A stretch of DNA of 64,000 bases from Scyliorhinus canicula (lineage: Eukaryota): contig NC_052146.1 of assembly GCF_902713615.1 (NCBI RefSeq), forward strand, positions 245,347,827 through 245,411,826, written 5' to 3'. The position numbers and the translations under genes are program-made. Positions 5,609 through 48,089 of this stretch are shown here, piece by piece (positions within the stretch are counted from its first letter, which is position 1; every line of letters begins with the position of its first letter). Under the pieces are notes generated by a model that searched no databases, was not told the DNA's origin, and worked only from the letters and a program-made list of their open reading frames with translations.

Positions 5609-5731
5609 GGCAATTTCCAGAGTGATTGCCTGGGGACACAGGGTTTGAATTCGGTCATGGTTGAATTTATAAAATCTGGAATTAAAAGTGCAAAGATGAC
5701 CATGAATCAATTGCCGTAAAAACACACCTGG

Positions 5732-10865: not shown

Positions 10866-11299
10866 ACTCAAGTTCACCTTCTTAAAACATAAAGTGAACA
10901 TCTTAGCAACCATTAATTCAAATACAGCCCCCAAAGAATACAACACTAAGTAATCTTTTAAGCTTTCCTTTTAACATCTATAAGACTTAAAACACTTTTT
11001 ACCAGAAGCACATCAGGTTAAAGTTACTACGGTTATTAGTTTTAAATCACCAGGATCGATTTAAAGTCTTTAGATTACAGAGAGAGACACTAATACACCC
11101 TCTGGCTGTGACTGCAGCTATCGAGCTCTGAAAACGAAACTAAAACACATCCTGCAGCAAACAGCCCAAAACAAAAGTAAAAAGCTGACAGATAGCCCAG
11201 CTCCACCTACTCTCTGACATCACTGGAGTAGTAAACATCGATTTCTTAAAGGATCTCTCACTACAGAAATTTATATACACATCCATTTATAAACACCAT

Positions 11300-12043
11300 G
11301 GACGCAATTCTCCCATCGGGAGATTAAGTCCCGATGCCGGAGTGAAAACCGGAGTATTTCACTCTGGCGTCGGAGGCCGCTCCCAGCCCCCCATTCTCCC
11401 ACCCCCGGGGGGCTAGGAGTGGCGCCGTGCCATTTACGCACGCCGGGCCTTGGTGCCGCGTAAAAGCGGTGCCGCGTAAATTATATGGCCAGCGCCACGT
11501 AAATGACGTCACCTGCGCATGCGCAGGCTGGCCAGCGCCAACCCGCGCATGCGCGGTTGCCATCCTCCCCGCGGCCGCCTCGCAAGAAGATGTTGGATGG
11601 ATCTTGCGGGGAGGCGGAGGAAAGGAGGTCCTCCTTCAGAGAGGTCCGCCCGCTGATCGGTGGGCACCCATTGTGGGCCAGACCCATTTTGAGGCCCCCC
11701 CAGTGAAAGAACCCCCCTCCACCCCCCACAGGCAGCACCCCCCCCCCCCCCCCCCCCAGCGTTCCCGCTCTGTTCCTGCCGGCAGCTACCAGGTGTGGAT
11801 GGCGCAGGCGGGAACCTGTCGTGCTGGGCAGGCCGCTCGGCCCATCCGGGCCGGAGAATCGCCTCTCGCCCATTACAAATGGCGAGCTGCGATTCTCCCA
11901 GTAGCGAGGCGTGAATCTGGCCATGCGGGTTTGGGGGGGGGGGGGGGGGGAGAATCGCGTGCGGGTGCCGGGGCGGCGTGGCGGGACTCGCTCGGCGCCC
12001 TGGCGATTCTCCCACCCGGCGTGGGGGGGGAGAATTCCGCCCC
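11300..12043. mobile_element. PIF/Harbinger MITE, CpG-rich
   Basis: TIR GGACGCAATTCTCC / GGAGAATTCCGCCC; 3-bp flanks CAT/CAG. Confidence 0.8.
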
Positions 12044-13256
12044 CAGTTCTTAAAGGTACTCTCACATGACAATAGGAATTAGGTTTTAATAATAGCATGG
12101 ATTACTTGTCTCATTTAATTATGCAACCTTTAATGCATTCAGGAAAAATTTCTTCACATAATAGAGGGAAAGGAATGCTGTAATGAAACATGGTTTTCAA
12201 AGGATTTCAATAAAACCATTTTTTTTGCATCATTTATAACTACCCACAGTATTTCCTTCAGTGACTTCTAAGGTAAATGCATAACCAACAAAATGGTTAA
12301 TCAAGAGGGGCAGCCAAGTGGAAAGAAAACAGATTTTTATAGATTTTGCTCAGTTATATTTCTGATTCTGTGTGTCTTCTTCCCGATTAGAAGTCTAACA
12401 CTGTTCTTATACTTACACAGCAAACCTGAAGTAACATCAAATGAATGAGGAAATATTACATGATGCCATTGTATTTGCACCTACTGTGTTTTGCTTACCT
12501 GACACACTGATTTACTTCTGGGAACCTCACTGTGTACATGCAGGAACCTGCCTGTATCCATGCATGAGCAGCGGTGAGCTAATTTTTGATGAAGTCAAAC
12601 CTCTCAGTGTGCACAATAATTTCCTGTGGTTGCACACAGATTCAGCCTGATTAACAATATGAATCAAACAACTCTGGGCTGCAGTGATCAGGGAGAAATG
12701 GGAGCTGAACTTGCATCAGTAAATAGGTTTATTTCATTTTGTTGTTTTATGTCACCTTCAGAATGTGAATTCAGAGCTAGAATTTTCTGAGGGAGTGATG
12801 GGGGGTGGAAACCACTTAATCTTAAACGGTAATCCTTTGTTTGTATTGATAGTTCAAGAGTTAGGTTTTGCCACCCAATCAACAACTACCGGCCATCTTG
12901 TTGGCAACCCATCCCGGCCCCTGGGTGGACGCCGAGATAAGGGCCGTATGGGTGGTTGCCCCCCTCCCTCCCTTGCTCCGCCCCCCTCCTGGGCCACCCC
13001 TCCCCGACCACCCCACTCAACTAGCAACACCCACCGGGGGACCATCCAGGGCCACAGCGACGCTGCCCCCAGTGAGGGCAGTGCCGTCAAATGGTGGCCC
13101 TGGCAGCAGAGCCGAAGTCAGGACCGGGGGCATCGATGGGGTTGGGGGACATGCATGGTTGGGGCGCGCGGTGACAACCGGGGCCACCATTTAGCCCATG
13201 GTGGTTGCGCACGGGTTTATGCACCATGACAACATGCTTTTCCCTCATCCCCTGCA

Positions 13257-14045
13257 GACAATCATATTTGGTCAGCAATCAGCTACGTTGGCCCTTAGTG
13301 GCGGCGGCGACTGCCCTGCATGCAGCCCTGTGGCAGCGTGGGCGGGGCTGTCTCAGAGAGGAGGCGGAGGCAGCAGCAGAGGAGCGGGCTGCAGAGGGGC
13401 AGGTGCCGGCCGCCCGACAGAATGAGGAAGAGGAGATGGGGCCAAGGAGGCGCCGGATGAGGGCACGTGTCTACCGCAACCACAAGTGCTTTGAGAACCT
13501 CACGTGCAGGAGGAGACTGCGGATGAGCCGGGAGACTGTTCGACACATCTGCCACATGATGGCACACCTGGCACCGCGTGGGAATGGGGGAGGACACCCA
13601 CTCCCGGTGGCCGTCAAGGTGACGGTCGCACTCAACGTTTATGCGACGGGGTAGTTCCAGTCGCCGAGTGGGGACTTGTCTTGGATTTCCTAGGCATTGG
13701 CGCACAGGTGCATCCGTGCTGTCACCGATACCCTGTATGCCCTTGCGGATGGTATGTATGGTACCCTGTGGACCGCGACCACCAGGATGCCCAGGTAGTG
13801 GGCTTCGCCACCACCGCCGGGATGCCCCGGGTCCAGGGGGTCATCGATGGGTTGCATGCCACCCTGCGGCCACCGGCGGAAAACAGGCCGCTATTCAGCA
13901 ACCGAAAGGGGTACCACTCTATGAACATTCAGGTGGCCTTGACCACCAGTTGAAGATCCTGCATGTCTTTGCCTGATACCCGGGCAGTGTACATGACTCA
14001 TTCGTTTTGGCATAATCTGTGATCCCCAACATGTTCGAGGGACAC
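13257..14045 (+). pseudogene. Harbinger DDE transposase (HARBI1-like), disrupted and C-terminally truncated
   Basis: CRRRLRMSRETV, HPLPVAVKVTVALNVYATG*FQ, GMPRVQGVIDG, NRKGYHSMNIQV, YPGSVHDSFVL; in-frame stops and frameshifts. Confidence 0.88.
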
Positions 14046-14374
14046 CCCCCCCCCCCCCCCCCGGCCTCGCCCCCCTCCCCTCCCCCTCCCCCTCCCCCTC
14101 TCTCTGGTATCAACAAGGTTCTGAACATTAGCAGCCATGGAGCACAGAGAACGGACCATCTCCCTCTGTGTCTGTGCGGCCGGCCATCACCTGGGCAATG
14201 CCGCCGATGCTGTCAGCCATGGCATGCTGTGACTGGGCCACGCTGAGGAGCGCCGCTGCAATCTCCAGGTGACTCTGGCACATGGTTTCCTGTGAGAGGG
14301 CAGCCCTGTCCTGGGCCACGGCCCCCGCCTGCACAGAATGCCCCAGGCCTTGCACACACTGCCCCATGTCCGAC

Positions 14375-15295
14375 TTGGTTCCAACTCCATCTACAAGTTT
14401 GCTGATGATACGACCATAGTGGGCCGGATCTTGAATAACGACGAGTCCGAATACAGGAGGGAGATAGAGAACCTAGTGGAGTGGTGCAGCAACAACAATC
14501 TCTCTCTCAATGCCAGCAAAACTGAAGAGCTGGTCATTGACTTCAGGAAGCAAAGTACCGTACACACCCCTGTCAGCATCAACGGGGCCGAGGTGGAGAT
14601 GGTTAGCAGTTTCAAATTCCTAGGGGTGCACATCACCAAAAATCTGTCCTGGTCCACCCACGTCGACGCTACCACCAAGAAAGCACAACAGCGCCTACAC
14701 TTACTCAGGAAACTAAGGAAATTCGGCATGTCCACATTAACCCTCACCAACTTTTACAGATGCACCATAGAAAGCATCCTGTCGGGCTGCATCACAGCCT
14801 GGTATGGCAACTGCTGGGCCCAGGACCGCAAGAAACTTCAGAGAGTCGTGAATACCGCCCAGTCCATCACACAAATCTGCCTCCCATCCATTGACTCCAT
14901 CTACACCTCCCGCTGCCTGGGGAAAGCGGGCAGCATAATCAAGGATCCCTCTCACCCGGCTTACTCACTCTTCCAACTTCTTCCATCGGGCAGGAGATAC
15001 AGAAGTCTGAGAACACGCACGAACAGACTCAAAAACAGCTTCTTCCCCGCTGTTACTGGACTCCTAAATGATCCCCATATGGACTGACCTCATTAACACT
15101 ACACCGTGTATGCTTCATCTGATGCCAGTGCTTATGTAGTTACATTGTATATGTTGTGTTGCCCTATTATGTATTTTCTTTTATTCCCTTTTCTTCCCAT
15201 GCACTTAATAATCTGTTGAGCTGCTCGCAGAAAAATACTTTTCACTGTACCTCGGTACGCGTGACAATAAACAAACCCAATCCATTCCAATCCAA
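14375..15295 (+). mobile_element. Rex1/Babar-type LINE, 5'-truncated, RT C-terminus open to 15087
   Basis: KFADDTTIVG, KTEELVIDFRK, FYRCTIESIL, LLPSGRRYRS, RLKNSFFP; tail GTGACAATAAA followed by (CCAAT)n. Confidence 0.9.
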
Positions 15296-15649
15296 CATTG
15301 CCGCCCCATTGCCTCCATGCAGAAGTCACCTATGCGGTTTCGGCCTGGGGGACACGCATCACACAGATGGACTCCTCTACCTGTGTCTGCACGTTCCGGA
15401 AGTGGGCTGATATCTCCTCCTTTAGTCACTGGGTCTCTACCTGCACTATGGGTGGGACTGGACCTTCCAGGAGCCCGGGATCCGTCTGGACAGCAGCTTG
15501 TTGCTGGGGCTTTCTTGCCCACCTACCATCCGGCCCCTTGACAATTCCTACCTCCACCAGCTGTACTGGAACAACTATGTGGTGCGCACCAGTGAGTGTC
15601 CCAGAAGCCTCTTCACTAATTTGCCCAACCGAGATGGTGGAGCGTGATG

Positions 15650-16980: not shown

Positions 16981-17936
16981 TTCTCGGGCAGAGTGCTGGT
17001 ATTCTGGCTGCTCTCCCTATCAGTACTCGGCTATCTGAGGGCACCGGCTCTGCCACTCGTTGGGGCCAGGGGGCCCTGGATGTGCCTGACCCAGCTCTGG
17101 CTGGTCTTGTAAGACACAAGACCAGCCGGTATGGTTAGACAGCCGGACGGGGGTGGGGCATGAGGTGGCGAGGGCTGGGGTGAGTGGGTGTGTGGGGGGG
17201 GGTTGGTATGGGTACACATTTGTCATGAGGACCAGCAACCAGGCAAGGGGGTCTCACTTTGTGGCGCGCCGCTGACTTCCGCATCGGTGACCTCCCTCTC
17301 CTCCAACCCGCCGACAATGGTTAGTGCCCTGTGCTCGGGCACGGTGAAGGGACGCAGGTCTGGTAGGTCACATCCAGTCTTCTCCCGCTCCCGGCAGTTG
17401 TGCGCAGCTTTGTCCTGGAGTGGGGCAAACACAAACAGCAACAGTGTTAGATGGCCCGACGCATGCAGCCCAGAGGTTGGGCAACTGATGGCATCAGTGG
17501 TCAGGGCACGCCCATTGCAGCTGGCATGGGTGCAGCAATGTGGGTCACGGTGGGGGTGGGGGCGGGTCACATGTGTGTGGTGGGTAGGGTGCCCCTGGTT
17601 GCCCTGAAGTGGTTGTGCAGTTTTTTTCTGCACTGGTCTGCAATCCGGGAAACCACCCCGACAGCGCTGACGGTGGCTCCCACCTCTGCCCAATGAAGGC
17701 AAATGATGGTGCCTGCTGACCGCCGTCCCGGCCTGGTGTATGGTATCAGACTCCTCTCCTCCAGGGAGTCAAATAGGGTCTCCTGTTCGGCGTCCCGGAA
17801 TCGCGGCCATGTTGGCTGCGATGCTTGTGTGTGTGTGAGGGGGAGAATGGTTTATGTACAGCCGCAGCATCACGTCAATCACGGTTGAAGTGTTGGCTAG
17901 TGTAGACTTGAGAGATGAACAGACACTTCCAACACT

Positions 17937-19094: not shown

Positions 19095-22000
19095 TCATAA
19101 GTTCAGTCTCTGAGGTGGGCGACAAACTCTGGTTGACCGCCTCAAGGGTGGGATAATGGCTGGCGCCTCAGGAGCCAGGAGGGATGCAGCACTGTCAGGG
19201 GCAGGCAGAGTGACTGGAAGCGCCACACAGTCCACGGCAGGATCAGTAGCAGAGCTGGTTGGAGGATCCCTTGACGACCCTGGAACCAGGCGATGAGCAC
19301 GCCTGTTGCGGCGCCGAATGGATCCATCCGGTAAGCGGACCAGGAAGGAGCGGGGGACCACCTGCCTTAGAACGACAGCAGGCGCAGACCAGCCACCGTC
19401 CGGGAGGTGGATGCGACCCTTGTAGCGTGGATGGATGTCAGTAAGGTCAGCAGAGCACGTGAGTTGTAGGAAGTTTTCTGCTGCAGTTGAGACCTGTGCA
19501 TGTGGTGGAGCACGGGGAAATAATCGAGGTTGGGAGCGAGAATTGATGGCACCTTCGTTCTGAGGGTGCGGTTCATTAGTAGCTGAGCAGGCGACAGGCC
19601 GGTGGAGAGCGGGGTGGAGCGATAGGCTAGCAGAGCAAGATGGAAATCTGAGCCAGCGTCGGCGGCCTTGCTGAGGAGCCGCTTAACAATGTGGACCCCC
19701 TTTTCCGCCTTCCCATTGGATTGGGGGTATAGGGGACTGGACGTAACGTGCTCGAAGTTGTAGTGTTGGGCGAAGCCAGCCAATTCCTGGCTCGCGAAAC
19801 AGGGGCCATTGTCCGACATGACCGTCAGCGGAATGCCATGTCGGGCAAATGTCTCCTTACAAGCCCTGATCACAGCCGAGGATGTGAGATCATGCAGCAT
19901 GATGACCTCCGGGTAACTGGAGAAGTAGTCGATGATGATGACCTAGTCCCTGCCAATGCATGGAACAAGTCGATGCCCACTTTGGTCCAAGGCGATGTGA
20001 TGAGCTCATGGGGCATCAAGGTCTCCCATGATTGGGTGGGCTGAAAACGCTGGCAGGTAGAGCAGTTGAGCACCATATTGGCGATGATATCATTGATGCC
20101 CGGCCAGTAGACAGCTTCTCTGGCCTGCGGCGGCACTTCTCGATGCCTAAGTGCCCTTCATAGAGTTGCTCCAACACTAGCTGGTGCATGCTTTGTGGGA
20201 CGACGATGCGATCCAATTTCAGGAGCACCCCGTCGACAACCGCCAGGTCATTGCGGACGTTGTAAAATTGCGGGCATTGGCCCTTGAGCCAACCGTCTGA
20301 CATCAGGCGCATCACCCACTGCAGAAGTGGATCAGCCGCTGTCTCGCGGTGAATTTGCATCAGTCGTGCATCCGTAGCTGGCAAATGGGAGGCTGCAAAC
20401 TGAACGTGAGCAGCTATTTGGCAAATGAAGCCGTCATGATCACACGGAGTTGTGATCGACCTTGAGAGGGCATCGGCAACGGCAAGGTCCTTGCCAGGGG
20501 TATAGATCAGTTGAAAGTCATATCTGCGCATCTTGAGTAGGATACTCTGGAGGCGAGGCATCATGTCACTCAAGTCCTTTTTGATAATATTTACAATCGG
20601 GCAGTGGTCGGTTTCAACCGTGTACTGCGGAAGTCCACAGACGTAGTCGTGGAACTTCACAACTCCAGTGAGAAGGCCGAGACACTCTTTCTCAATTTGC
20701 GCATAGCGCCGCTCTGTGGGTGTCATCGCCCGCGACGCATACACAACGCGGGCCCATGACGAGGCCTCGTCTCGTTGCAGGAGCACGGCACCAATCCCCG
20801 ACTGACTGGCATCAGTAGAGATTTTGGTCGGGTCAAAAAAAACCAACACTGGGGTCATGGAGAGCTTGGCCTTCAGCTCCTGCCATTTATGCTCGTGAGC
20901 AGGGAGCCATCGGAAATCTGTAGTTTTGCGAATCAGGTCTCTGAGGGCTGTGGTGTGTGAGGCAAGATTCGGAATGAACTTCCCGAGGAAATTCACCATT
21001 CCCAAGAACCAGAGGGCCGCTTTCTTGTCCTCAGGCGTCTTCATGGACGTGATTGCTGCAATCTTGTCCTCGTCCGGACGCACCCCCTGGTGGAAGATGT
21101 GATCCCCCAGAATCTTGATACTCGACTGGCCGAAGGAGCATTTGGCCCTATTGAGTCGGAGGTCCTGTTTGTGGATGCGCCTGAAAACACGCTGAAGGCG
21201 GGCAATGTGTTCCTGCGGGGTGGTTGACCAGATAATAATGTTGTCGACATATACCCGGACGCCATCGATCCCCTCCATCATCTGCTCCATGATCCAGTGG
21301 AAAACATCGGACGCAGAGATGATGCCGAATGGCATCCAGTTGTAGCAGAACCTGCCAAAGGGTGTGTTCAACGTACACAGCTTCCTGCTTGACTCATCTA
21401 GTTGGATCTGCCAGAAACCCTTCGAGGCATCCAGTTTTGAGAATAGTTTGGCGTGGGCCATCTCGGACGTGAGCTCCTCACATTTCGGAATCGGGTAGTG
21501 CTCCCACATGATATTCTGATTCAGATCCTTAGGATCAATACAGATCCGCAGCTCGCCGGACGGCTTCTTGACGCAGACCATGGAGCTTACCCAATCTGTG
21601 GGTTCCGTGACCCTAGAGATGACTCCTTGGTCCTGGAGGTCCTGGAGCTGTTGCTTGAGGTGGTCCTTGAGGGGCGCTGGGACTCTGCGAGGTGCGTGAA
21701 CGACAGGCGTGGCTTTGGGCTTGAGCAAGACTTTGTACATGTAGGAGAGCGTGCCCATGCCTTCGAAAACATCATGGTATTGCTTGATGATGGAGTCGAG
21801 TTGCGCCCTGAAGTCTGTGTCAGAGGATGCAGACACATCGCTTGAAGAGAGAGATTGTGTACTCTGCACTAAGTGGAGCAGCTTGCATGCATGCACACCA
21901 AACAAGGAGGCGTTTGAGGCAGCAACAATCTCGAACGGGAGAATGACTGCGTGAGCACGATGTGTCACCTCAAGGCAGCAGGAGCCGCTGGCGGCGATGG

Positions 22001-22274
22001 CATTGCCATTGTAGTCCAGCAATTTACACGCAGATGGCAGGACAGCAGGCTGTACGCAGAGCTTGCGAAAATCAGACGATGCAATGAGATTGGCAGAAGC
22101 GCCAGTGTCCAGGCGGAACCTGACAGCGGACCGGTTGACCGTAAGGGTGGCACACCACTCATCATCCTGGCTGACGCGGACCGGTTCAGTGCCACGCTTG
22201 GGGGGCATCCTGTTCGTAGTAACGACGCTGATTTGGAACGGGACCTGTGGGTCATTGCAGGCAGTCGGAATCAA
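19095..22274 (-). pseudogene. Gypsy pol (PR, RT, RNase H, IN), frameshifted
   Basis: FRLDTGASAN, LRICIDPKDLN, LDASKGFWQI, MPFG, YVDN (YVDD mutated), TDASQSG, GHLGIEKC, GIDLF, SDNGPCF, PQSNGKAEK. Confidence 0.92.
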
Positions 22275-23234: not shown

Positions 23235-23613
23235 TGTTATATTACTGGGTTGAAGTAATATCTGTCGTTAATGGTTGCTGCTGATCCTGAGGAATACATG
23301 AGTCTTCAATGTAAAGCAAACAAATTTTGGAACGATAAGACTAATAAAGGAGTTTGACACTCGACTGAACTATCTCTAGAAATAAAGTAATGAGATATAA
23401 CTATATAAACTGTATTTGAATTATACATGGTGTCTAGGCTGTGATCTAACTGCACTATGCTACTGCTGTCTAGCTACTCCTGTGTGGAAAGAGACCAAGA
23501 TCCTCTGGGAGCTAGTATATATAGTGGGATCTTGTGGTGCCCTCCAGTGGTAGTGTCATAGCTCAGTGCTGTGATTAACCCTTTAGTTACATGTCTGTCT
23601 ACATATGATTACA
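23235..23613 (-). mobile_element. Solo LTR
   Basis: TGTTAT...GATTACA ends; reconstructed 5-bp TSD CACGG (17880)/CACAG (23614). Confidence 0.65.
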
Positions 23614-23767
23614 CACAGAACCGGCGAATCGGCCACCAGTCCATTAACAGAGTGTGGAGTTTCATGATACTTCCATGCTAGCCCCTTGGGAGTCGTTGAA
23701 TCGCTGCAGCTGGGGACCCGATCACGCCGTCGTGAAACTCCACCATTTTCACAACGGCGTCAACACT

Positions 23768-25024
23768 TAGAACATAGAACATTACAGCGCAGTACAGGCC
23801 CTTCGGCCCTCGATGTTGCGCCGACCTATGAAACCATCTGAAGCCAATCTGACCTACACTATTCCATTTTCATCCATATGTCTATCCAGTGACCACTTAA
23901 ATGCCCTTAAAGTTAGCGAGTCTACTACTGTTGCAGGCAGGGCGTTCCACACCCCTACTACTCTCCGAGTAAAGAAACTGCCTCTGACATCTGTCATATA
24001 TCTACTAACCCTCAATTTAAAGCTATGTCCCCTCGTGTTGGTCATCACCATCCGAGGAAAAAGAATCTCACTGTCCACCCTATCTAACCCTCTGACTATC
24101 TTATATGTCTCTATTAAGTCACCTCTCAGCCTTCTCCTCTCTAACGAAAACAACCTCAGGTCCCTGAGCCTTTCCTCATAAGACCTTCCCTCCATACCAG
24201 GCAACATCCTAGTAAATCTCCTCTGAACCCTTTCCAAAGCTTCCACATCCTTCCTATAATGTGGTGACCAGAACTGCACGCAGTACTCCAGGTGCGGCCG
24301 CACCAGAGAGTTTTGTACAGCTGCAGCATGACCTCGTGGCTCCGAAACTCAATCCCCCTACTGATAAAGGCTAGCACACCATATGCCTTCTTAACAGCCC
24401 TATTAACCTGGGTGGTAACTTTCAGGGATTTATGTACCTGGATGCCGAGATCTCTCTGTTCATCTACACTACCAAGAATCTTGCCATTAGCCCAGTACTC
24501 TGCATTCCTGTTACTCCTTCCAAAGTGAACCACCTCATAGGGGCTGGTTTAGCTCACCAGGGGCTGGTTTAGCTCACCAGGCTAAATCGCTGGCTTTTAA
24601 AGCAGACCAAGCAGGCCAGCAGCACGGTTCGATTCCCGTACCAGCCTCCCCGGACAGGCGCCGGAATGTGGCGACTAGGGACTTTTCACAGTAACTTCAT
24701 CGAAGCCTACTCGTGACAATAAGCGATTTTCATTTCATTTCATTTTCACACTTTTCCGCATTAAACTCCATCTGCCACCTCTCAGCCCAGCTCTGCAGCT
24801 TATCTATGTCCCTCTGTAACCATAACATCCTTCAGCACTATCCACAACTCCACCGACCTTCGTGTCATCTGCAAATTTACTAACCCATCCTTCTACACCC
24901 TCTTCCAGGTCATTTATAAAAATGACAAACAGCAGTGGCCCCAAAACAGATCCTTGCGGTACACCACTAGTAACTGAACTCCAGGATGAACATTTGCCGT
25001 CAACCACCACCCTCTGTCTTCTTT
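23768..25024 (-). mobile_element. 5'-truncated CR1 LINE, frameshifted
   Basis: [29 protein letters not shown]; (TTCTATG)n-type tail. Confidence 0.93.
24538..24746 (+). mobile_element. tRNA-derived SINE with Rex1-like tail and (CATTT)n end
   Basis: GGGGCTGGTTTAGCTCA head (duplicated), B box GGTTCGATTCCC, tail GTGACAATAA; interrupts the CR1 RT. Confidence 0.85.
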
Positions 25025-26689: not shown

Positions 26690-29600
26690 TCGCGGGCAGC
26701 AGGAGGGCCAACACTCAAAGCATCCCAGTCAAAGTAGTCGCCAGCCCCGGGGCCAAGCCTTGCATCTGTTTGAGGATGAGGCTGAAGTGCAGCGGAATTG
26801 TTTGGCATCGCCCCATATGGCCCCTATGCACGTTCTGATACAGGGGACTAGCTGTATGCTCCAAATGGAGTTGGATCCTGGAGCTGCCGTTTCTGTGGTG
26901 GCGTAGAGTACCTTTGATCGAAGCGAGGTGTGCATACTTTGATTTTTTTAAAAAATAAATTTAGAGTGCCCAGTTCATTTTTTCCAATAAAGGGGCATTT
27001 TAGCATGTTCAATTCACCTCCCTTGCGCATCTTTGGGTTGTGGGGCCGATACCCACGCAAACACAGGGAGAATGTGCAAACTTCACACAGACAGTGACCC
27101 AGAGCCAGGATCAAACCTGGGATCTCGGCGCCATGAGACTGCAGTGCTACCACTGCGCCACCATGCTGCCCCTTACCAGCCTCCCCGGACAGGTTCCGGA
27201 ATGTGGCGTCTAGGGGCTTTTCGCAGTAACTTCATTGAAGCCTATTCGTGACAATAAGCGATTTTCATTTTCATTTCATACTTTGATTTTGACACGGCGG
27301 CCTGTTTGGACACTTACATGGGAACAATTGAATATTGTCGGGACCATCTTGCTCAAGTAGTTTATGGGCAATCAGTTTGCCTTCTCCACATTGTTGTGCA
27401 AGGAAGAGGCCCCAGCCTGTTGGGTCACAACTGGTTGCACCAGCTGCAATTGGATTGGCAACATATCCTCCAATTGGAATCTGGCAGTGTGTGAAAGGTA
27501 CTGAGCAGGTTACCCAATGTTTTCCATCCTGGCTTGGGGCCGTGTCCAAGATCCAGGTGGACCTGGAGGCCCAATCCCGATATTTTCACACCCACCAGTT
27601 TCCTGCACCTTACTGGAGAAAGTCAAGGCCGAACTTCATTGTTTGGAGAGTTTGGGCATCGTAAGTCCTGTGCATTGCACCCAGTTGGCCGCACCTGTGG
27701 TCTCTGTAATGAAGCCGGGTAAGACTGTCCACCTCTGTGGAGATTATAAATTGACAGTGATAAATTGGCTTCAAGGTTAGACCGTTATATTTTATCATGC
27801 ATCGAGGATTTGTATGCGACATTGGGCAGTGACAATACATTTACAATTGGACATGAGCAACACTTATCTGCAGCTGGAGCTCGATGAATTGTCACAGCAG
27901 TATGTCACAATCAATTCACACAAGGTGAATACACCCAGCTCCCATTCGGAGTATCCTCTGCGTGCACAGTTTTCCAGCACACCATGAAGAACATCCTGTA
28001 CGGATTGCCACACATTGCAGTTTACTTTGACTACGTGCCCCTCATAGGGACCACAGACCAAGAGCACTTGCAGAATCTCGAGGCAGTGCTGAAACATTTT
28101 TTGGAGTAAGGGGTCAGCCTGCCCCGCACAAAGTGCGTGTTTCACGTGAAGGAAGTAGTATATTTGAGGTTTTGGGGGACCTGGAAGGGTTGCAATTGGT
28201 CACCGAGAAAGTGAGAGCCATCAAAATGGCTCCCGGCCCATGAGACACCACCGGGTTTTGGTCTTTTCTTGGACTAGTAAATTTCTATGGCCGATTTATT
28301 CTGAACCTGGCAACTGCACTGGCCAAACTTCACTTGTTCCACATGAAACACCAACCATGGGAATGGAGCAAGGCCCAGGATGAGATGTTTAAGACGGTGA
28401 AATGGCGGTTGTCCTCTTCGGGGGTGTTGGCATATTTCGACCTTTCAATACCATTTTACGTCACGTAGGATGCTTCGCCATATGGGATTAGGGAAATCGT
28501 GTCTCATTGGAAAAGCAATGCCCATGAACGTCCAATCGCTTTTGCCTCTCAGACGTTGCTACGGCTGGGAGAAAATATGCTCAAATAGAAAAGGAAGCCC
28601 TGGCGGTCGTATTTGGTGTAAACACTTTCACCAGTACATCTATGGCCGCCATCTCTTTACAACGAGGCCTCTTTTTCATGAGTGAACAGTTTGTTGTTTT
28701 TATGAAAGGGAAGGGATGCACTGCGCCATACCACCTGGCATCGAATGGCTTGGCCATGATGGCCATGTAAATGATTCAATGAGGACTAAAGTAACAGATT
28801 TCAGCTCGATGGACACCAGGCTGGGAAGATTTTTGTTTGCATACAGGACCACGCTGCCCACAGTAACTGGGGTGGCTCCTATTGAGATGTTCTTGGAAAG
28901 TAGGACTCGTACACGACTGAATTTGATTATCCCAGACATCGGTGCAAGGATGTGTCGTAACCAATATTTGCAAGGGCATTGCAAAGGTGTTGCCAGTTCG
29001 ATGTCGACCTCTTCGACACTTCACACCTGATGACATGGTGTTCGTCAATGACGCTGCTCGCTGGCTTTCTCGAATTGTCAGCTGCCAAATAGGACCATTC
29101 TCTTACCAAGTTCGGGTCCGGGGGCAACTGATGCGATGGTAGTTGGATTACATTCGCTCACATTGCACCCTCGCAGGAAACCTTTCCTGGATCCTCCAGC
29201 TCCATTGTTAAACCAGCCTGCGATGACGCCTCCAGTCTCTCTCAACACTGACGTGCCCGACTCTGAAATGGAGTCGCAGACCTCTGAGGTCTCGGACGCC
29301 AACCAGCTGCCTGCCGCCGATCATCCACCACAATGTTCTTGCCGCAGACGACGTGCACCAGAAAGGCATATGCCCACCAATCCAGCGCATCAGCTCAATG
29401 ACGATTTGCCGGGCCCGAAAAGAATTTAACGTCCTCCACCTGCTCCTCCTTCTCCGCCTCATGTGTTGTCAAATGGGTGTTTGGACTTTGCGAGGGGGGG
29501 AATATAATAGACCACACGGGGCCTATGGATGGGGGGGCGATGATTATCTTCCCCATGGTCCTTTTGGAGTATGAGCTCCCCCACTCAGAGAGAAGGATCT

Positions 29601-35209: not shown

Positions 35210-38200
35210 TGGCAAGATCAGAATTCTGCAGTGGCGTGGTAAGAAACCAGTAATCACCAATAAAGACCAATCTCCAGCCCATTAACGGGGAATACCCCTA
35301 TCGACCAGCCTCCAGTGATCTTACTGCCTCTCCAGCGAGCAATCAATCATTTAAAAAGGTGAAGTTGGTGGAGTAGCTGCTGTGGGGATCTTAGTAGCCA
35401 TCTTGAATTAGGGCACTCCAGCTACTGCCCCGGTGCACGCACGGGGGAGGGGGGCTTGAGGGTGGGAGGTGGAGGAGCCTCCAGGGGAGAGTGAATGGGC
35501 TCAGTAGGGGAGTTGGCCACCATTGGTGGGAGGTCCAGCGTCTGCAGGGCCCGGCATGCCAACCCCCCTGGATTGTGTATACCCATAATGGGGACAGCTC
35601 CAGACACTGCCTGTCCCACTGAACTCACCCGGGACAGTGCCCTGTACGTGGTAATATGGCGAAGGTCAATTTAACCCCCATGGACCATGGCGGCCTCTGA
35701 CTGCACAGCTGAAGGCTATTGCTAATTGGGAACTGGAAATTCTAGTAATGTGAACACTTCACAGGTCATAATGTGGATCCCTGTGGGTGCATCTACCATG
35801 GATGTGAGGGTGGGGAATGCCTGGGGATCCAAAGGGACTGGGGTGAAAGCCATAATTGTTTGTCAATCTCTCACCCTCTCTACTTCCTTTATTATGGGCC
35901 AGGGTTTAGGGAACACCCAAGTATATCCGAAAGTTCACCTGACCTACAACTTTTAATAGATTTTGGTTATGAGGAGCACAAGGGCCCACTTTCCAGGTGG
36001 TATGCAACAGAGACCTTAAGCATTTTTAAACAAAACAATGTTTATTCTATGAATCCAGTTAACATTTAATAAACACACAGTAAACATCTTATCAACTACC
36101 AACACTGATAACCCCCCAAAAATTAGTAACTTTCCTAACAACATCCATAAGCCAAACACCCTTTTTTCCTCCAAAACAGTAGGTTTGCATTCCTTACAGA
36201 AACAGGTAATACTTTGAAGTTATCACATGGTCTGGAGACATTCTTTAGCATGCAGAGAGAGAGAGAGAACAAAATATACCTCCTTGGTTTGAATGCAGCT
36301 CTCCAACTGAAAACAAAACTAAAAAGATCTCAGAGCCACAAAGCAGCTTCCAGCTCAAAATGAAAGTAAAAGACAGGATCACAGCCCAGCTCCACCCACA
36401 CAGTGACATCACTGCAGCCATTTGCTAAAACACGCTTTTCTTAAAGAGACCCTCACATGACACCTTGCAGTTATCACAGTATGAATGATATTGTGGACCC
36501 TGTTGAAGCTGCTATTGCAGTGCTGGTGGTAGGCCAGGTGGCCAGACACCGGAGAAGGCGGCGGTAGCGCATCAATGGAGTCTCGATGCGGCAGCTCATG
36601 TAAAGGGCCCCACCCTATACCCTGAGGATCCAGCCACCTGTCAGACCAGGGAGGGATCCAAAGGGGGAAGCTGGTGATGGTCCAAGGTGCACAGGCATCG
36701 CTGATCTTTCGAACAGATGTTGGACAGCATGTGCCGCAGGAGGCTCCTCCTCAACAAGGAGACGGTGCAGTACATATGCCACATCCTTGCGGACCTGGCA
36801 CCACATGGAGAGGAGAATACCTGTTCCTGGTGGTTATCAAGGTCACTGCAGTCCTGAACCTCTAAGCCTCGGGATCATTCCATGGCTCAAGTGAGAACTT
36901 GTGTAGCATTTCCCAACCTATAGCCCACAAGTGCATCCGTGAAGTCACGGATGCCCTGTTTGCCCGGGTAGCCGACTATATAAACTTTGACCTGGACCAA
37001 GCACAACAAAATGGCCATGCATCAGGATTGTCTGCCATCGTCCGGATGCCCCAGGTCCAGGGGGTAATAGATGGTTGACTCGCTCACACCAAGCGGTCCT
37101 GGAGCACGCTTCATCGACAGGAAGGGCTCCACTCCTGAACATCCAGTTAGTGTGTGACCACCTCATTCAGATCATGCACATGTGTGCATGTTTCCTCGCG
37201 AGTGTGCACGTCAGCTATATCCTGGGGCAGACGGAGATTCGAGGGACACCCCGGGATGACCGGTTGGCTCTTGGATGATGATGCCAGTACGGAGGCCAAT
37301 ATGGAGACCCGCTATAATGAAGCCCATGTGGTCACCTGGGCTGTCATTGAGTGGTGCATCGGACTCCTCAAAATGCTGTTCAGATGCCTCGACTGCTCTG
37401 GTGGTACACCGCATTACGCCACCTGGAGGGTCGCCCGCTTTGTGGTGGTCTGCTGTGCCCTCCACAACATGGCATAGCAGTGAGGCGACATGCTGGAGGT
37501 GGAGGAGAAGGAACATGTGGCCCACCTCAGGAGGAGGACAAGGAGGAGCCGGACCAGGAAGGTTTGGAAGATGAGCTCGGGGAGGACCCGCGGACAGCCA
37601 GAGGATGGAGGACGTGCAGCAGTGGCGAGGGTCCGGCATGCTCGGAGGGCCAGAGACACAGTCCTCAGCGACCGCAACATGCTCAGGGGTGCCTCAGCAA
37701 TGTCCACCTGAGACTGAGACATGCTCGGCTGAGCCTCGGAAAGATCCACCTGCACCAGGGATACATTCCCCAGTGACTGGGACATGTTTTTGAGATGCTC
37801 AGTCAGGGCTATCACTCACTGGGCCAAACCTTGGATACCATTAGTGAAGCTGCTCCAGGCTCTCCATTGCCACCTTAGCAGTGTTGTCCTCAGTGCCACA
37901 CATTGCCACCGCTATCTCCTGTGCCCATAGCCTTTGGAACTTCTCTAGTCGGCTATGACCCTGCTGGACTCAGCTGGGTCCTGGGATACGGCAGACCTCC
38001 GACTTCTGCCTCCCCTGGGTGTTCCTGCCTCCACCTGATGTGCATCTGCAACTGTGTAGTGCTCACCAGAATGTGCCCCAGAAGCCTGTTCACTACTTTC
38101 ACCCACCGGGACACGTGTCTCTGCGCTGGTGAAGGGTAGTGATGACATCCGTGAAGTGATGACGGTGGCATATGGGTCGGCACCGCCGGTTTGCAATCCT

Positions 38201-42330: not shown

Positions 42331-43894
42331 TACTGTATTTTCTTTTATAGGTGTAAATATTTAACATTTTTCCTCTGCAGAGTAAAACATTTTGTTTTGG
42401 TCCAATCTCGGAGGCAACTGTAAATAATATGAGAACATGTTTCATAAGAGGTCCACCTATTTTAGCCATGCAGACATTTAATTACCAATATGAATTTCCT
42501 CTGTGAACCAATTACAATTCTCATACTTGACTGGAGAAATCTTTGTGCAATATTTAGGACGCCATAACAATGTGTGAATAATACGGTTGAGAGTTACTTC
42601 ATGCCTAAGCCAGAATGAGTGATAATAAGTCGGTGTATGTGTAAATGAGAAGATGATAAAATTATTCATGGTTGGATGCACGGATGAGTTTCAGACAAAG
42701 CATTAAATAATGAAAATGTAGCTTTTCCCAACTAAGTGACTTGCATTATCCACAGTGTCCTGTTTTCGGAATAAAACATTTTATGAATTAAACCAAATGT
42801 TGCTTTCTCCAGTGTTAATTCAATCCACCTTTGGGCAGATTAAAAAGGAACATGCCTGTTTATGATACAAGGTCTGGCGCTGATCATAAAGCAGATTCAT
42901 TGTTGCATTACCTGGTCTTGCTGCTGCACCAGTAGATAGAGGGCAACAGGGGGCAACTTCTTTAAAATGCAGACAGTCAGTCTGCTTGAGGGAGTGACTG
43001 ACACCATTGAACCTGTGGTAGATCAAAATACATAACATCCATTAATGTGCACTGCGTAGGCTTATACACATGGGTCACAACCTTCAGGGGATGACTGTCA
43101 GTAAAAACAAAATGGTGTGAATGCTAGTGGAAGGTATCATAAGCATTTATAATTCCCCCTCTTTTTCCTATAATACAGCGGGGGGGGGGGGGGGGGGGGA
43201 GGACTTGGGGCCTAAGTAAAGTGTTCTTTCGGAGAGTTGGGGCAGACTCGATAGGCCAACTGGTCTCCTTCTGCACTGTAGGGATTCTATGAAAATTGCT
43301 GGATCCTGATTGCAAAAGTTAACATGATACCTGAAGAGATAAAAAATAAGGGCTAAATTTGATTATGTCATGGATAAAAACAAAACAAAGCATATTCATG
43401 TACCATTGTCAGAACACTGAGGCAGGGATAGATCATATCTTATATGAGGTAGGCATCACATAATATAAGTGATGGTAAATGCAATCTTTGAGATTGGCTT
43501 TAATCTCGGCCCCAGTGCTAGGGGAGGAGGGGGTGCTATAGTGTTCCAGATCGGGGGTCGCCCCATTCGTCTGTGAGGCCTTCAAGCCATCTTTAAATAT
43601 TGAGGAGACCCATAACAGGGGTAACTACCCTTCTATCCGAACAAACACTTCCAGGACAGAGCCCTGTTCTTGGTCATATGCTGGAGACTACTTTAACTCC
43701 CTCTGACTGTGAGCAGCCTCTAGCTTCACAGCTGAAAACTATTATTAATAAGAAACTGGCCTTGTTAGTTATGTGAGCACTTGACAGCTCTCAACTGGTG
43801 CTGCAGGTTGTGTTTGCTGCTTGCTGCTGCTGGTGGCTACAAATGCCAAGAGGCTGCTGGTGTTTCTTTCCTTTTCTGTATCCGGAAAGAAGGA

Positions 43895-44272
43895 CAATTA
43901 TTTCTAAGATACCTGGGTCCTGGAACACCGGGCTCAGAGGGCTGTCTGAGTCCAGAAAGCAATCCAGTTTGAAGCAAGAAGACGCTGCGCAACATTGATC
44001 CAAATGGGCCACCTGATGTCGTTGTCAAAGAAATGCTTTCGCAGATTGCTGATGCTTTTGTTGTTGATGTGGTGAGTGTTGCATGTAACTGGCCCGTCAC
44101 CACGGGTTAAACAAGCTGGAAGTCAAGGATGTTCAACTGCACCTTGAGCGGCAGTGGGATATGTGGATGCCAGGATTTGGTTCTGGTGAGATTGGGACGT
44201 GTGGGAGGGCCTGCACAGCTGCAGCTCCTGGACAGAGAATAACACTGATGCGTGGAACAAGTAACACATTGA
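43895..44272 (+). pseudogene. TAF12: Processed TAF12 (TFIID subunit 12) pseudogene, copy A
   Basis: KIPG/PGTPGSEGCLSPESNPV; IDPN..VKEMLSQIADAFVVDVVSVAC; then after a frameshift LARHHGLNKLEVKDVQLHLERQWDMWMPGFGSGEI..ACT. Intronless. Confidence 0.92.
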
Positions 44273-44649
44273 TGGGCAGATCATTTCGATGTCAAATTTC
44301 TGGACATGATGACATATTCTCAAGCTTATCCTCCGTTTCTGTTGATGAACATGCTAGGGGTGATGCCGTGACTTTGTTTCTTTTGTGAAAATTAGCTTTT
44401 TATTGGTCCCAACATGGAATTGTGACATTGCCTTATTGATTAATGGTTAGTGTGACATATGGAATGTTAAGTAGTTGATTTTTAAATCTGTGTTACTGTT
44501 GACCATTTAATAAATAAAATATTCTCAAGTGGTGCTGCAGGTTGTGTCTGACACTTGCTGCTGCTTGTGGCTGCAAACGCCTGGAGGCTGCTGCTACTTT
44601 TCATTCTTTCCCTGTAGCCTGGAGTAAGACAACGGAGGATGGGAAGATG

Positions 44650-44846
44650 AAAATGAAATGAAATGAAAATTGCTTATTTTCACGAGTAGGCTTCAAAAGA
44701 AGTTACTGTGAAAAGCCCCTAGTCACCACATTCCGGCGCTTGTTCGGGGAGGCTGGTACGGGAATTGAACGTGCTGCTGGCCTGCCTTGATCTGCTTTCA
44801 AAGACAGTGATTTAGCCCTGTGCTAAACCAGCCCTGTGCTAAACCA
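44650..44846 (-). mobile_element. Rex1-tailed tRNA SINE
   Basis: Same family as 24538; TSD AGATGA; duplicated 5' end. Confidence 0.85.
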
Positions 44847-44884
44847 GATGACCTGCTGCCTGGGCTTGAGTAGGGGAACTCTTT

Positions 44885-45588
44885 GGCCGGGATTCTCCCC
44901 TACCCGGCGAGGTGGGGGGTCCTGGCGTGATGGAGTGGTGTGAACCACTCCGGCGTTGGGCCGCCCAGAAGGTGCGGAAATCTCCGCATCTTTAGGGGCC
45001 AAGCCCTCACATTGAGGGGTAGGCCCGCGCCGGAATGGTTGGCGCTCCGCCAGCTGGCATGGATGGCCTTTGGCGCCATGCCAGACGGGGCCGAAAGGAC
45101 TTCGCCGGGCAGCGTAAGTCCGCGCATGCACCGGAGCGTCAGCGTCTGCTGACGTCATCCCCGCGCATGCGCAGGGGAGGGGGTCACTTCTGCCTCCGCC
45201 ATGGTGAAGGCGGAAGGAAAAGAGTGCCCCCAAAGCACAGGCCCGCCCGCCGATCGGTGGGCCCCGATTGTGGGCCAGGCCACCGTGGGGGGAACCCCCC
45301 GGGGCCAGATCATCCCGCGCCCCCCTCAGGGCCCCAGCCCGCCCGCGCCATCAGTCCCGCCAGTCAGGTAGGTGTTTTGATTCCCGCCGGCGGGAGAGGC
45401 TTGACAGCGGCGGGACTTTGGCCCATCGCGGGCTGGAGAATCGCCGGGGGGGGGCCCGCCGACTGGCGAGGCGCGATTCCTGTCCCCGCCGAATCTCTGG
45501 TGGCGGAGAATTCGGACACAGCGGGGGCAGGATTGACGCCAGCCCTCGGCGATTCTCCGACCCGGCGGGGGGTCGGAGAATCCCGCCC
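44885..45588. mobile_element. Harbinger MITE, CpG-rich
   Basis: GGCCGGGATTCTCC / GGAGAATCCCGCCC TIRs; related to 11300-12043. Confidence 0.85.
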
Positions 45589-46284
45589 CAGATCTCTTCT
45601 TGCCTGCTTTGGGGGTGTTGTGTTTGATCCTTTGTACTTCAAGATAAACTCACCAAACACTTCGACCTGCCCAAACGAAGATCCTTTTATTGTGCCTCAT
45701 GTGGTAGGATGGCAATCTGATACAGAGCACATTATCATGGAGTCTTGTTACTTCTCTGAAACTTACACCTTCTGCTGACCTGTTACATGTGCATCTTATT
45801 ACACTCTATCTCGTGTTCTTCTCCAGATGGTCAGATGAGCATCTCTTTGGAAACAGGTCCCAGGTCACATGACCTTGGTCTTCAGATTGCATGGTGTGTC
45901 TGTACCGCCGCCTGCTGTTTCGAGGCCTCACACCATCCAACTATGATATGGCCCCTGGGGATATCACCTGGGGATGTGACCTTCCACTTCTGAGGAGTTT
46001 ACTGCTGGGAGCTGCAAGAGGGGGAGAGAGAGGCAGATCGATTTGGATGAGCAATGTTTGCTGCTTGTTGATGCTTGCAGCTGCAGCTGCCTGGAGGCTG
46101 TGTGTTTGTTTGCTGCCATCTCTTTGCTTTTGCAGCCTAGAGTAAGGAAAGGGTGGTAAGATGACCTGCTCCCTGGGCTGGAGCAGGAGAAGGGGAGCTC
46201 TTTCTCTCTTCTGATGTGCTCTGGGTCGGTGCAATTTTTCACTGCTGGGGAGTCTTCTTCTGGGAGCTTCAGGAAGGAGAGAGA

Positions 46285-46799
46285 AAGGCAGATTGATCTG
46301 AATAAGCAATTTGATGAAGGTGTTGAAGAAATGCCATTGCAGCTTGCAAGTGATTTTATTTTTGGTGTGGTGAGTGCTGCATGTCAACTAGCACAACACC
46401 GCAAGTCGAACATGCTGGACGTCGAGGCTGTTTTACTGCATCTTTTCTTTTAATTTACAGTACACAATTATTTTTTTCAAATTAAGGGACAATTTAGCGT
46501 GGCCAATCTACCTAACCTGCACATCTTTGGGTTGTGGAGGCGAAACCCACGCAAACACAGGGAGAATATGCAAACTCCTCACGGACAGTAACTCAAGACC
46601 GGGATTTGAACTTGAGTCCTCAGCGCCGTAGGCAGCAGTGCCAACCACTGTGCCACATGCCACCCCTGCTTTACTGCATCTTGAATTCTATTGGAACATA
46701 TGGGTATTGAGCTTTGGCTCCAATTGAATAAGGCCATATGGGAAGGCCTGTACAACGAAGGCTCGTAGACAGAGACTGATATGTAAAATGACCACATAG
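46285..46799 (+). pseudogene. TAF12: Processed TAF12 pseudogene, copy C, split by a SINE
   Basis: RQIDLNKQFDEGVEEMPLQLASDFIFGVVSAACQLAQHRKSNMLDVEAVLLHL|EFYWNIWVLSFGSN*IRPYGKACTTKARRQRL. Confidence 0.92.
46445..46669 (-). mobile_element. Short HE1/V-SINE variant
   Basis: 13-bp TSD TTTACTGCATCTT (46432-46444/46670-46682). Confidence 0.88.
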
Positions 46800-46977
46800 C
46801 AAGGATCCCCCATTCTGTTGACGACCTGTGAGGGGTGATAGTGTGTTTGATTTGTCTTTGTACAAATTAACTGTTGTAGCTTTGTGTTTGTAGTGGAAAT
46901 GTACCTGTATGTAAATGTCACAGTGCCTTTTCCTTGTTGATTAATGGTTACTGTGATTTATGGACTATTGAGTATTT

Positions 46978-47308
46978 CATAGAATCAGTGCACAAGACCA
47001 TTTGGCCCAGCGAGTCTGCACTGGCTCTTGGAAAGTGCACCCTAGCTAAGCCCACACCTCCACCCTATCCCTGTAACCCAGCAACCCCACCTAACCATTT
47101 TGAACAGTAAGGGGCAATGCAGCATGGCCAATCCACCTAACCTGCACATCTTTGGACTGTGAAAGAAAACCGGAGCACCCGGAGGAAACCCACACAGACA
47201 TGGGGAGAACATGCAGACTCCAGACAGACAGTGACCCAAACCAGAATCGAACCTGGGACCCTGGAGCTGTGAATCAACAGTGCTCACCACTGTGCTACTG
47301 TGCCGCCC
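46978..47308 (-). mobile_element. HE1/V-SINE, full length with CR1 tail
   Basis: tRNA head, V-domain, CR1-type tail. Confidence 0.88.
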
Positions 47309-47392
47309 ATAGTAGTTGGTTTTCATCTTTTTGTATAAAAGGTACTGTTGACCATTTAACAAACAAAATATTCTCAAATGCATTCTCATGGG

Positions 47393-47645
47393 TACATGTC
47401 TGCACGTCCTCCCCCTGTGTGCGTGGGTTTCCTCCGGGTGCTCCGGTTTCCTCCCACAGTCCAAAGATGTGCAGGTTAGGTGGATTGGCCATGCTAAATT
47501 GCCCGTAGTGTCCTAAAAAGTAAGGTTAAGGGGGGGTTGTTGGGTTATGGGTATAGGGTGGATACGTGGGTTTGAGTAGGGTGATCATGGCTCGGCACAA
47601 CATTGAGGGCCGAAGGGCCTGTTCTGTGCTGTACTGTTCTATGTG
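47393..47645 (+). mobile_element. HE1/V-SINE, 5'-truncated
   Basis: V-domain and GGGCCGAAGGGCCTGTTCTGTGCTGTACTGTTCTATG tail. Confidence 0.85.
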
Positions 47646-47761
47646 CCATCTCTCAGACGATGAACATTGCATCACATTTCAATCAAACCTTGAAGCCTGA
47701 ACAGTTTGCCAGAACTCTAGAAGCTTCAGCACCATATAGGCAGCAGCCAACAATCAGACAA

Positions 47762-48078
47762 GGGATGCAATGGTGTAGTGGTATTGTCACTGGACTAGTA
47801 ATCCAGAGACCCAGGGTAATGCTCGAGGGACCCAGGTTCAAATCCTGCCAGGTCAGATGGTGGAATTTGAATTCAATAAAAATCTGGAATTAAAAGTCTA
47901 AAGATGACTATGAAACCATTGTTAATTGTCGTAAAAACCCATCTGGTTCACTGATGTCCTTTAGGGAAGGGAATCTGTCATCCTTACCTGGTCTGGCCTA
48001 CATGTGACTCCAGGTTGATTCTGTGGGCAATAAATGCTGGCCAGCCAGTGATCCAGCCATGAACATACAAAGAAAAAA
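47762..48078 (+). mobile_element. tRNA-derived SINE (family of 33943)
   Basis: GGTATTGTCACTGGACTAGTAATCCAGAG head, GGTTCAAATCC B box. Confidence 0.8.
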
Positions 48079-48089
48079 ACACTCACGAG

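Follow-up and report, generated by a model that had tools for sequence, protein, structure and literature searches.

How did an intron-free piece of TAF12 come to lie three times over, head to tail, at one locus of the catshark genome, and was a mobile element involved? The locus lies in a window of 64,000 nucleotides from Scyliorhinus canicula (contig NC_052146.1, 245,347,827 to 245,411,826; positions below are those of the window). The initial annotation of this DNA had described tandem units of TAF12 histone-fold sequence behind a shared leader, and had proposed either a retrocopy recruited into a unit that amplifies head-to-tail or a fast-evolving array of TAF12-like paralogs.

The TAF12 identity of the units, and their lack of introns, were confirmed by comparison with protein profile, transcript and gene. 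Pfam PF03847 matched at 46160-46450 (E = 5.8e-15), 43973-44107 (1.1e-6) and 44089-44385 (5.3e-6). Elasmobranch TAF12 mRNA aligned with the array by blastn at E = 1e-65, unit A matching positions 409-1147 of transcript L002. The 25-kb skate TAF12 locus served as gene reference in place of the catshark gene, which spans about 27 kb; blastn aligned unit A with skate exons 2-6 (67–82% identity), and unit C aligned with exons 3-6 (70–82%). The five skate exons matched by these two units (12503-12550, 14699-14737, 17078-17192, 21080-21169 and 23475-23855) are spread over 11 kb and fall at adjoining coordinates in the units, with seamless joints and all introns gone; intron positions in TAF12 agreed with shark isoforms and single-exon ORFs. 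In protein searches with the ORFs of the units, every match was either a genuine TAF12 gene or a single exon from another animal; pseudogene ORFs from sharks were not among them. An N-terminal likeness of a unit ORF to P0003 looked like chance and was set aside.

At their 3' ends, the tails of units A and C aligned with the 3'UTR of L002 until 4 bases short of its poly(A), matching up to ...AATAAAATATT(A)CTCAAC(T)TG, after which poly(A) comes next in the transcript. The 3' segment common to A and C, correctly noticed at the outset, is plain TAF12 3'UTR as far as the cleavage site and not a shared segment foreign to TAF12. The copies combine the loss of introns with an end at the parental polyadenylation site, as processed pseudogenes do. 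No run of A follows any tail in the array, in agreement with the initial annotation. Its companion statement, that there is no target-site duplication, holds for a free duplication, which was not found; yet the whole array is bracketed by a direct repeat, CTCTCAACTG (43788-43797) on the left and TTCTCAAATG (47371-47380) on the right. This sole repeat is 8–10 bases long and equal to the final bases of the TAF12 mRNA, which it overlaps. ATTCTCAANTG was considered as a LINE-type 3' tail motif and rejected, being present only at the two tails.

The array consists of three head-to-tail units, A, B and C (Table 1). Sequence comparison showed the leader to be common to all three, as first described. 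The reported junction before both A and B was likewise recovered, with the joint word GTGCTGCAGGTTGTGT exactly at 43798 and 44532 and CTCAA(C/G)TG ahead of each; the boundaries between units coincide precisely with the cleavage site of the mRNA and lack any intervening A. TAF12 homology begins at one identical point in all units, GTGGTAAAGATACC, in the middle of exon 2. Unit A does not, then, keep more of the N-terminus than unit C, as had been thought; units B and C have a replaced or expanded stretch in their TAF12 part. Unit B had been described as a third copy cut at its start. It is truncated, but on its 3' side: the leader (HMM matches at 44531-44649 and 44846-44881) and the first TAF12 part are present, and the TAF12 part stops after ...RQIDLDEQ (46054), where the leader of C starts. 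Within these units, 45982-46055 (B) is 80% alike to 46237-46310 (C).

The units are broken up by later insertions. The short interspersed repeat in unit B is bordered by AGATGA (44645-44650 and 44846-44851), the non-coding element beside it has a sibling at about 11300-12043, and the insertion in the histone fold of unit C has duplicated 17 bases of its target (46428-46444 and 46667-46683). Segment 45625-45975 of unit B had no relative in the window, in TAF12 mRNA, in the TAF12 gene or in Rfam.

Table 1. Features of the TAF12 array and of the Harbinger copies compared with it (window coordinates).
Feature	Position	Strand	Remarks
Sibling Harbinger without TAF12	35405-38140	+	8 kb away; empty site 35768/35769
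Harbinger left arm	43483-43797	+	about 70% alike to 35405-35768 of sibling
Unit A	43798-44531	+	leader 43798-43904; TAF12 coding-derived part 43905-44262 (mid exon 2 to stop)
Unit A, 3'UTR-derived part	44263-44531	+	terminal bases ATTCTCAAGTG
Unit B	44532-46054	+	leader 44532-44640, then beginning of TAF12 part; broken up by later insertions
Short interspersed repeat in unit B	44651-44845	-	88% alike to 24544-24748
Non-coding element with terminal inverted repeats in unit B	44885-45588	.	arms 44885-44916 and 45557-45588
Extra segment of unit B (about 350 bases)	45625-45975	+	absent from unit C
Unit C	46055-47380	+	leader 46055-46152, without its first 13 bases
Unit C, TAF12-derived parts	46153-46444 and 46667-46796	+	Pfam PF03847; skate exons
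SINE-like insertion in histone fold of unit C	46445-46666	+	copies at 26958-27173 and 51681-51863
Unit C, 3'UTR-derived parts	46797-46974 and 47315-47380	+	tail HMM; terminal bases ATTCTCAAATG
SINE-like insertion in 3'UTR part of unit C	46975-47314	+	copies at 53688-53975 and 57990-58295
Harbinger resumption behind array	47381-47397	+	aligns with sibling across joint
Transposase remnants and region upstream	48290-49524	+	TAF12 units in same orientation
Rightmost shared part of array-bearing copy	51302-51475	+	81% alike to 37966-38131

The leader, of about 100 bases, is joined to the TAF12 part 190 bases inside exon 2, and units A, B and C align straight through this joint. Since a single leader/TAF12 joint is common to the three units, they descend from one ancestor. 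No match to the leader was found in TAF12 mRNA, in the 25-kb skate locus or in Rfam, consistent with the original remark that it could not be matched to TAF12 coding sequence. The suggested comparison of leader and tail with the TAF12 UTRs therefore gave a divided answer, the tail being 3'UTR and the leader matching neither mRNA nor gene. An origin from the 5'UTR or an intron of TAF12 was rejected on these results and on the position of the joint within exon 2, and an origin from a known small RNA or tRNA was rejected after searches, including Rfam, returned no match. Kinship with a minus-strand repeat (11068-11161 and 36239-36283) was suggested by nhmmer at E = 0.02 and rejected because the MAFFT alignment disagreed; TAF12-tail-like sequence is absent from this repeat. 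Substitutions among the leaders are nearly star-like (AB 19, AC 17, BC 23), a pattern also compatible with one burst.

The surroundings of the array belong to a decayed copy of a PIF/Harbinger element (43483-51475), in which it sits downstream of the left arm and upstream of the transposase remnants. Pfam DDE_Tnp_4 (PF13359, cut-off 24.8 bits) matched the sibling element at 37151-37474 with 32.4 bits (E = 8.7e-8); matches in the array-bearing copy, at 49214-49411 (2.1e-4) and 49038-49157 (0.043), and in a third copy were collinear in the profile and below the cut-off. The array-bearing copy is 68% alike to 36705-37656 of the sibling over 1014 bases (E = 6e-108), a similarity that extends to 48342/36463 and 48290/35833, and its similarity to both sibling Harbingers stops near 51475/38140. 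Behind the transposase, rearrangement has produced a palindrome. No Pfam match to the Myb/SANT-like partner protein, the product of a second gene in such elements, was found among 27 reading frames taken from across the window rather than picked from the regions expected to hold that gene.

On the left, similarity to the sibling continues to the first base of the array, with CTCTCAACTG as the final 10 bases of the arm; the flanks as a whole (43483-43797, 47381-47397 and 48290-51475) are collinear with sibling 35405-38140. When the array was excised in silico, 43797 joined to 47381 aligned through the joint with sibling 35769-35797, although the stretch aligned over the joint is a short one (27 bases, fixed-position P about 0.03). 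Transduplicated cargo is recognized by a host fragment inside an element with an empty site in a sibling, and the collinear flanks and the array-excised joint show just such an arrangement here. The idea that the unit was mobile thus gains a concrete candidate vehicle, the PIF/Harbinger element around the array. Neither terminal inverted repeats nor a 3-base target duplication were found at the array-bearing copy or its sibling, copies that are about 30% diverged and perhaps truncated; the ends of the Harbinger are therefore undefined, and the cargo reading is based on internal collinearity only. No inverted repeats border the array itself.

We favour, with a probability of roughly 55%, the reading that a single chimeric TAF12 cDNA found its way into a PIF/Harbinger element, was then triplicated in tandem and has left the array as its dead remnant. 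A 5'-truncated, deadenylated TAF12 cDNA, joined beforehand to the leader by a template switch or as filler, would have been captured where the transposon was broken or nicked, via microhomology with the last bases of the mRNA. The first tandem copy could have arisen when the two flanking repeats slipped or exchanged unequally, and the next by exchange between whole units; because B and C share a derived replacement, they would have split from each other later than from A. A later deletion may have taken the end of B together with the first 13 bases of the C leader, and the units would then have drifted neutrally and received three SINEs and a small inverted-repeat element. The TAF12-bearing Harbinger itself likely moved while it was still active. 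Head-to-tail growth is explicable by ordinary tandem duplication alone. Counted against this account is the repeat of 8–10 bases, which is short for unequal exchange; the account also leaves about 300 bases between array and transposase (47653-47755 and 48081-48289), as well as 45625-45975, unaccounted for. What it retains of the initial proposal of a retrocopy in a head-to-tail amplifying unit is the cDNA origin, the joint multiplication of leader, TAF12 and 3'UTR, and the deadness of the copies.

A wider role for the element is conceivable, although we regard it as rather improbable. In that case a shark Harbinger subfamily would be a vertebrate 'Pack'-type vehicle of spliced host cDNA, which took the leader-TAF12-3'UTR module to many sites, the module multiplying in tandem within the element as well, since a repeat identical to its own 3' end stands on either side of it. 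Slightly less probable again is a one-off accident, in which a TAF12 retro-sequence fell by chance into a dead Harbinger, was duplicated locally and never moved along. The window holds three Harbinger copies in collinear blocks, and the presence of TAF12 in just one of them, the lack of TAF12 pieces outside the array within 64 kb, and the lack of intact transposon ends around it are all consistent with such an accident.

Concatenation at the RNA level is more doubtful. Reverse transcriptase would have switched from the 5' end of one TAF12-leader RNA onto the 3' end of another, and so on, with a single insertion of the resulting multimer; as part of this doubtful reading, the 10 bases at the left edge would represent a fourth, extremely 5'-truncated unit. 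Unit joints placed at the cleavage site with no A between them, and the nearly star-like divergence of the leaders, are consistent with this mechanism, and an array that begins in the last 10 tail bases and ends with a full tail resembles a 3'-anchored, 5'-truncated product. The sibling, however, has native Harbinger sequence with which these left 10 bases align too, and neither a LINE-type 3' tail nor poly(A) is present. Moreover, the derived replacement and a 6-base gap occur in B and C but not in A, so that at least one duplication at the DNA level is required anyway.

Coding capacity has been lost throughout. In unit A, 7 bases have been inserted, the reading frame meets a TGA at 43970 and it is shifted by 1 base near 44085; unit C has a stop at 46725 and a SINE within the fold; none of the three units has a start codon in place. 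Stops, frameshifts or truncation in every unit bear out the initial annotation in calling the copies disabled. Changes private to A and to C are spread evenly over the codon positions (11/17/9, p = 0.25, and 17/11/20, p = 0.27, respectively), with branch lengths of 0.20 for A, 0.26 for C and 0.11 for the common stem plus parent lineage. The units thus appear to have drifted neutrally, by about 0.20–0.26 substitutions per site each. A second species shares roughly a fifth of unit A's 31-mers, which implies about 95% identity and hence a locus older than the split of the two species. That the units are working, fast-evolving TAF12-like paralogs, or encode a histone-fold protein for the transposon, is highly improbable and for these copies already contradicted, for although an open stretch of 97 codons in unit C is still recognized as a TAF12 fold, every unit is broken and without a start, codon positions have changed evenly, the fold of C is split and related ORFs are absent from protein searches. 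The locus is old, broken debris, with no function at stake here.

In plants, cut-and-paste transposons are well known to capture pieces of host genes; to our knowledge, few cases have been reported in animals, and these involve genomic rather than spliced fragments. Among animals, the locus would be a rare example of a spliced host-gene copy within a DNA transposon and, if the favoured reading is true, joining at microhomology with the end of the mRNA would be the route by which a cDNA entered a DNA transposon. A literature search found no papers linking TAF12 with Harbinger or with a retrocopy. Like LINE-mediated processed pseudogenes, the copies are intron-free, collinear with the mRNA, 5'-truncated, furnished with the mRNA's own 3' end and neutrally decayed. 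They differ from such retrocopies in the lack of poly(A), in a flanking repeat that is microhomology to the mRNA end, in the leader fusion and in the head-to-tail triplication. Template switching produces chimeric retrocopies of the U6-L1 type, and the R2 reverse transcriptase jumps between templates end-to-end. The array shares with the former a foreign 5' part on an mRNA-copy 3' part at a non-splice position, and with R2 template jumping the fact that templates can join head-to-tail without added bases; in contrast to template-switch chimeras, its leader is no known small RNA (Rfam), poly(A) is lacking and multiplication took place partly at the DNA level. Transduplication by cut-and-paste transposons is represented by plant Pack-MULE and Pack-TYPE elements and by Turmoil-1, of the Harbinger superfamily, in C. 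elegans; in Turmoil-1 and most Pack elements the fragments are genomic, retain their introns and are often placed within or close to the terminal repeats (PMC2572040; PMC8903248). The composite shark element is a candidate mobile element. It resembles these elements in having a host-gene pseudogene piece inside a Harbinger-superfamily DNA transposon and a sibling element without the piece, whereas the shark piece has been spliced in full and extends to the polyadenylation site behind a foreign leader, and its three tandem copies stand upstream of the transposase gene. Such capture would be clearly exemplified in vertebrates by a Harbinger that holds TAF12 in fully spliced form, especially if it has spread.

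The tandem arrangement first proposed for this region was confirmed: three units (A, B and C), each comprising a leader of ~100 bases followed by TAF12 sequence, lie head-to-tail, and Pfam searches recovered the TAF12 histone fold (PF03847) in unit C (5.8e-15) and, in two frames, in unit A (1.1e-6 and 5.3e-6). The 16-mer GTGCTGCAGGTTGTGT occurs exactly at 43798 and 44532, preceded in both cases by CTCAA(C/G)TG, in agreement with the CTCAA(C/G) junction reported before A and B. Unit C lacks the first 13 bases of the leader. Unit B had been read as cut at its start; the truncation observed is on its 3' side. B and C share a derived stretch, replaced or expanded, immediately upstream of the exon 2/3 joint.

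Features of the TAF12 array, its later insertions and a related Harbinger copy
Feature	Positions	Orientation	Remarks	Basis
Unit A	43798-44531	same as B, C		direct reading of 43000-48200 and self-comparison
Unit B	44532-46054	same as A, C		direct reading of 43000-48200 and self-comparison
Unit C	46055-47380	same as A, B		direct reading of 43000-48200 and self-comparison
SINE-like repeat	44651-44845		later insertion in unit B; flanks AGATGA	
Element with inverted ends	44885-45588		later insertion in unit B	
SINE	46445-46666		inside histone fold of unit C; 17-base target duplication	
SINE	46975-47314		later insertion in unit C	
Third partial Harbinger copy	13301-15634			flank comparison within window

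True elasmobranch TAF12 references were obtained by HMMER search and cluster look-ups, giving three transcript contigs (L001-L003) and the thorny-skate gene (L004). Identity between L002 and L004 was 98-100% in exons 2, 4, 5 and 6, with a value of 95% for exon 3, indicating that the transcripts come from a skate. The catshark TAF12 gene covers a range of ~27 kb, so the parent gene has introns. Units A and C match skate-gene exons at 12503-12550, 14699-14737, 17078-17192, 21080-21169 and 23475-23855, and these pieces, separate in the skate gene, adjoin one another inside the units, bearing out the description of the TAF12 sequence as intronless. Shark isoforms and single-exon ORFs of other vertebrates gave identical intron positions. 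On these alignments, the units are spliced TAF12 copies. The common tail of A and C aligns over its length with the TAF12 3'UTR, ending ATATTCTCAA(G/A)TG where the real transcript ends ATATTACTCAACTTG and then poly(A); as originally noted, poly(A) is missing, with no A run after any tail of the array. Compared with true TAF12 UTRs, the notion of distinctive flanking segments failed for the tail, which is ordinary 3'UTR, and stood for the leader, which is foreign to TAF12: it has no match in TAF12 transcripts, the 25-kb skate locus or Rfam, consistent with the initial annotation, which could not match it to TAF12 coding sequence. Among public-library proteins, P0002, a glutamine-rich protein of 389 residues that is not a shark sequence, contains two near-identical tandem TAF12 histone-fold copies.

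TAF12 homology starts at GTGGTAAAGATACC in all three units. Because this point lies 190 bases inside exon 2, the leader/TAF12 joint is not a splice joint, and its recurrence in three units means that all descend from one chimeric ancestor. With the array excised, 43797 joined to 47381 aligned through the joint with 35769-35797 of a sibling Harbinger copy that lacks TAF12 (P about 0.03), marking the empty site and indicating that CTCTCAACTG (43788-43797) belongs to the transposon itself. This stretch and TTCTCAAATG, which ends unit C, are the two copies of a direct repeat between which the entire array lies; the repeat equals the last bases of TAF12 mRNA. We propose that a 5'-truncated TAF12 cDNA without poly(A), its leader already joined, was fixed in the transposon at this microhomology, and that the repeats on either side then slipped or exchanged unequally, generating head-to-tail copies with joints exactly at the mRNA end. 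The changes common to B and C call for one or more duplications at the DNA level. It is also possible that a template-jumping reverse transcriptase concatenated the copies in one step.

On its left side the array is preceded by 310 bases (43483-43797) that resemble 35405-35768 of the sibling. Beyond its right end, 48554-49524 and 36705-37656 are 68% alike over 1014 bases (E=6e-108); this similarity reaches 48342/36463 and 48290/35833, with more blocks onward to 51475/38140. The matching blocks encode DDE_Tnp_4 transposase remnants with readable Harbinger motifs, scoring above the cut-off in the sibling (32.4 bits) and giving weaker, collinear matches in the array-bearing and third copies. Collinear flanks and transposase remnants thus show that the array is inserted within a PIF/Harbinger copy, now decayed, upstream of the transposase and in the same orientation, a setting absent from the initial annotation. 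Inverted terminal repeats of the array-bearing element were looked for and not found.

Two further decayed Harbinger copies with DDE_Tnp_4 remnants lie at 35405-38140 and 13301-15634. In the first, another insertion, distinct from the array and akin to 9706-11228, occupies 35892-36462, at a distance of 118 bases from the TAF12 site; the second is interrupted at 14296-15084 by an insertion that bears a reverse transcriptase. Between array and transposase, 47653-47755 and 48081-48289 match neither sibling Harbinger, TAF12 nor window repeats. A near-perfect palindrome (49869-51261; arms 49869-50278 and 50849-51261, 99-100% complementary, around a ~570-base middle with a long C run) consists of Harbinger sequence homologous to 37662-37941; it either arose recently by inverted duplication or is an artefact of the assembly. 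Elsewhere on the minus strand are an LTR-retrotransposon pol region (19367-22274; a 751-residue open frame with protease, RT and RNase H domains, adjoined by an integrase piece) and LINE remnants (2042-5740; one ORF with a reverse transcriptase domain, another with a GDSL-lipase-like domain), near which 1950-2075 holds a possible frameshift site.

All copies are dead, as initially described: an in-frame stop and a frameshift interrupt unit A, which also has a 7-base insertion, unit C has a premature stop and a SINE in the fold, and a start codon in place is absent from all three units. When A, C and the parent were compared over 285 aligned coding sites, changes by codon position were 11/17/9 private to A, 17/11/20 private to C and 6/4/13 shared; among shared changes, the third-position excess fits synonymous substitution on the lineage of the parent. 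Branch lengths were 0.20 for A, 0.26 for C and 0.11 for stem plus parent. Units A and C drifted neutrally; codon-position spread and branch lengths indicate that the units separated early and drifted afterwards. About one-fifth of unit A 31-mers are held by a second species, equivalent to ~95% identity, so the locus predates that species split. The GC-rich, non-coding element of ~700 bases at 44885-45588 recurs at about 11300-12043; with inverted ends containing GGGATTCTCC...GGAGAATCCC and recurrent internal GAGAATC words, it looks like a MITE family.

The array is a real observation and the object is dead debris. Our literature search found no paper tying TAF12 to Harbinger or to retrocopies. 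Of the known systems, transduplication by DNA transposons comes closest. In the Harbinger-type Turmoil-1 of C. elegans, the captured fragment retains an intron (PMC2572040), whereas the TAF12 piece is spliced, complete to its 3' end and triplicated.
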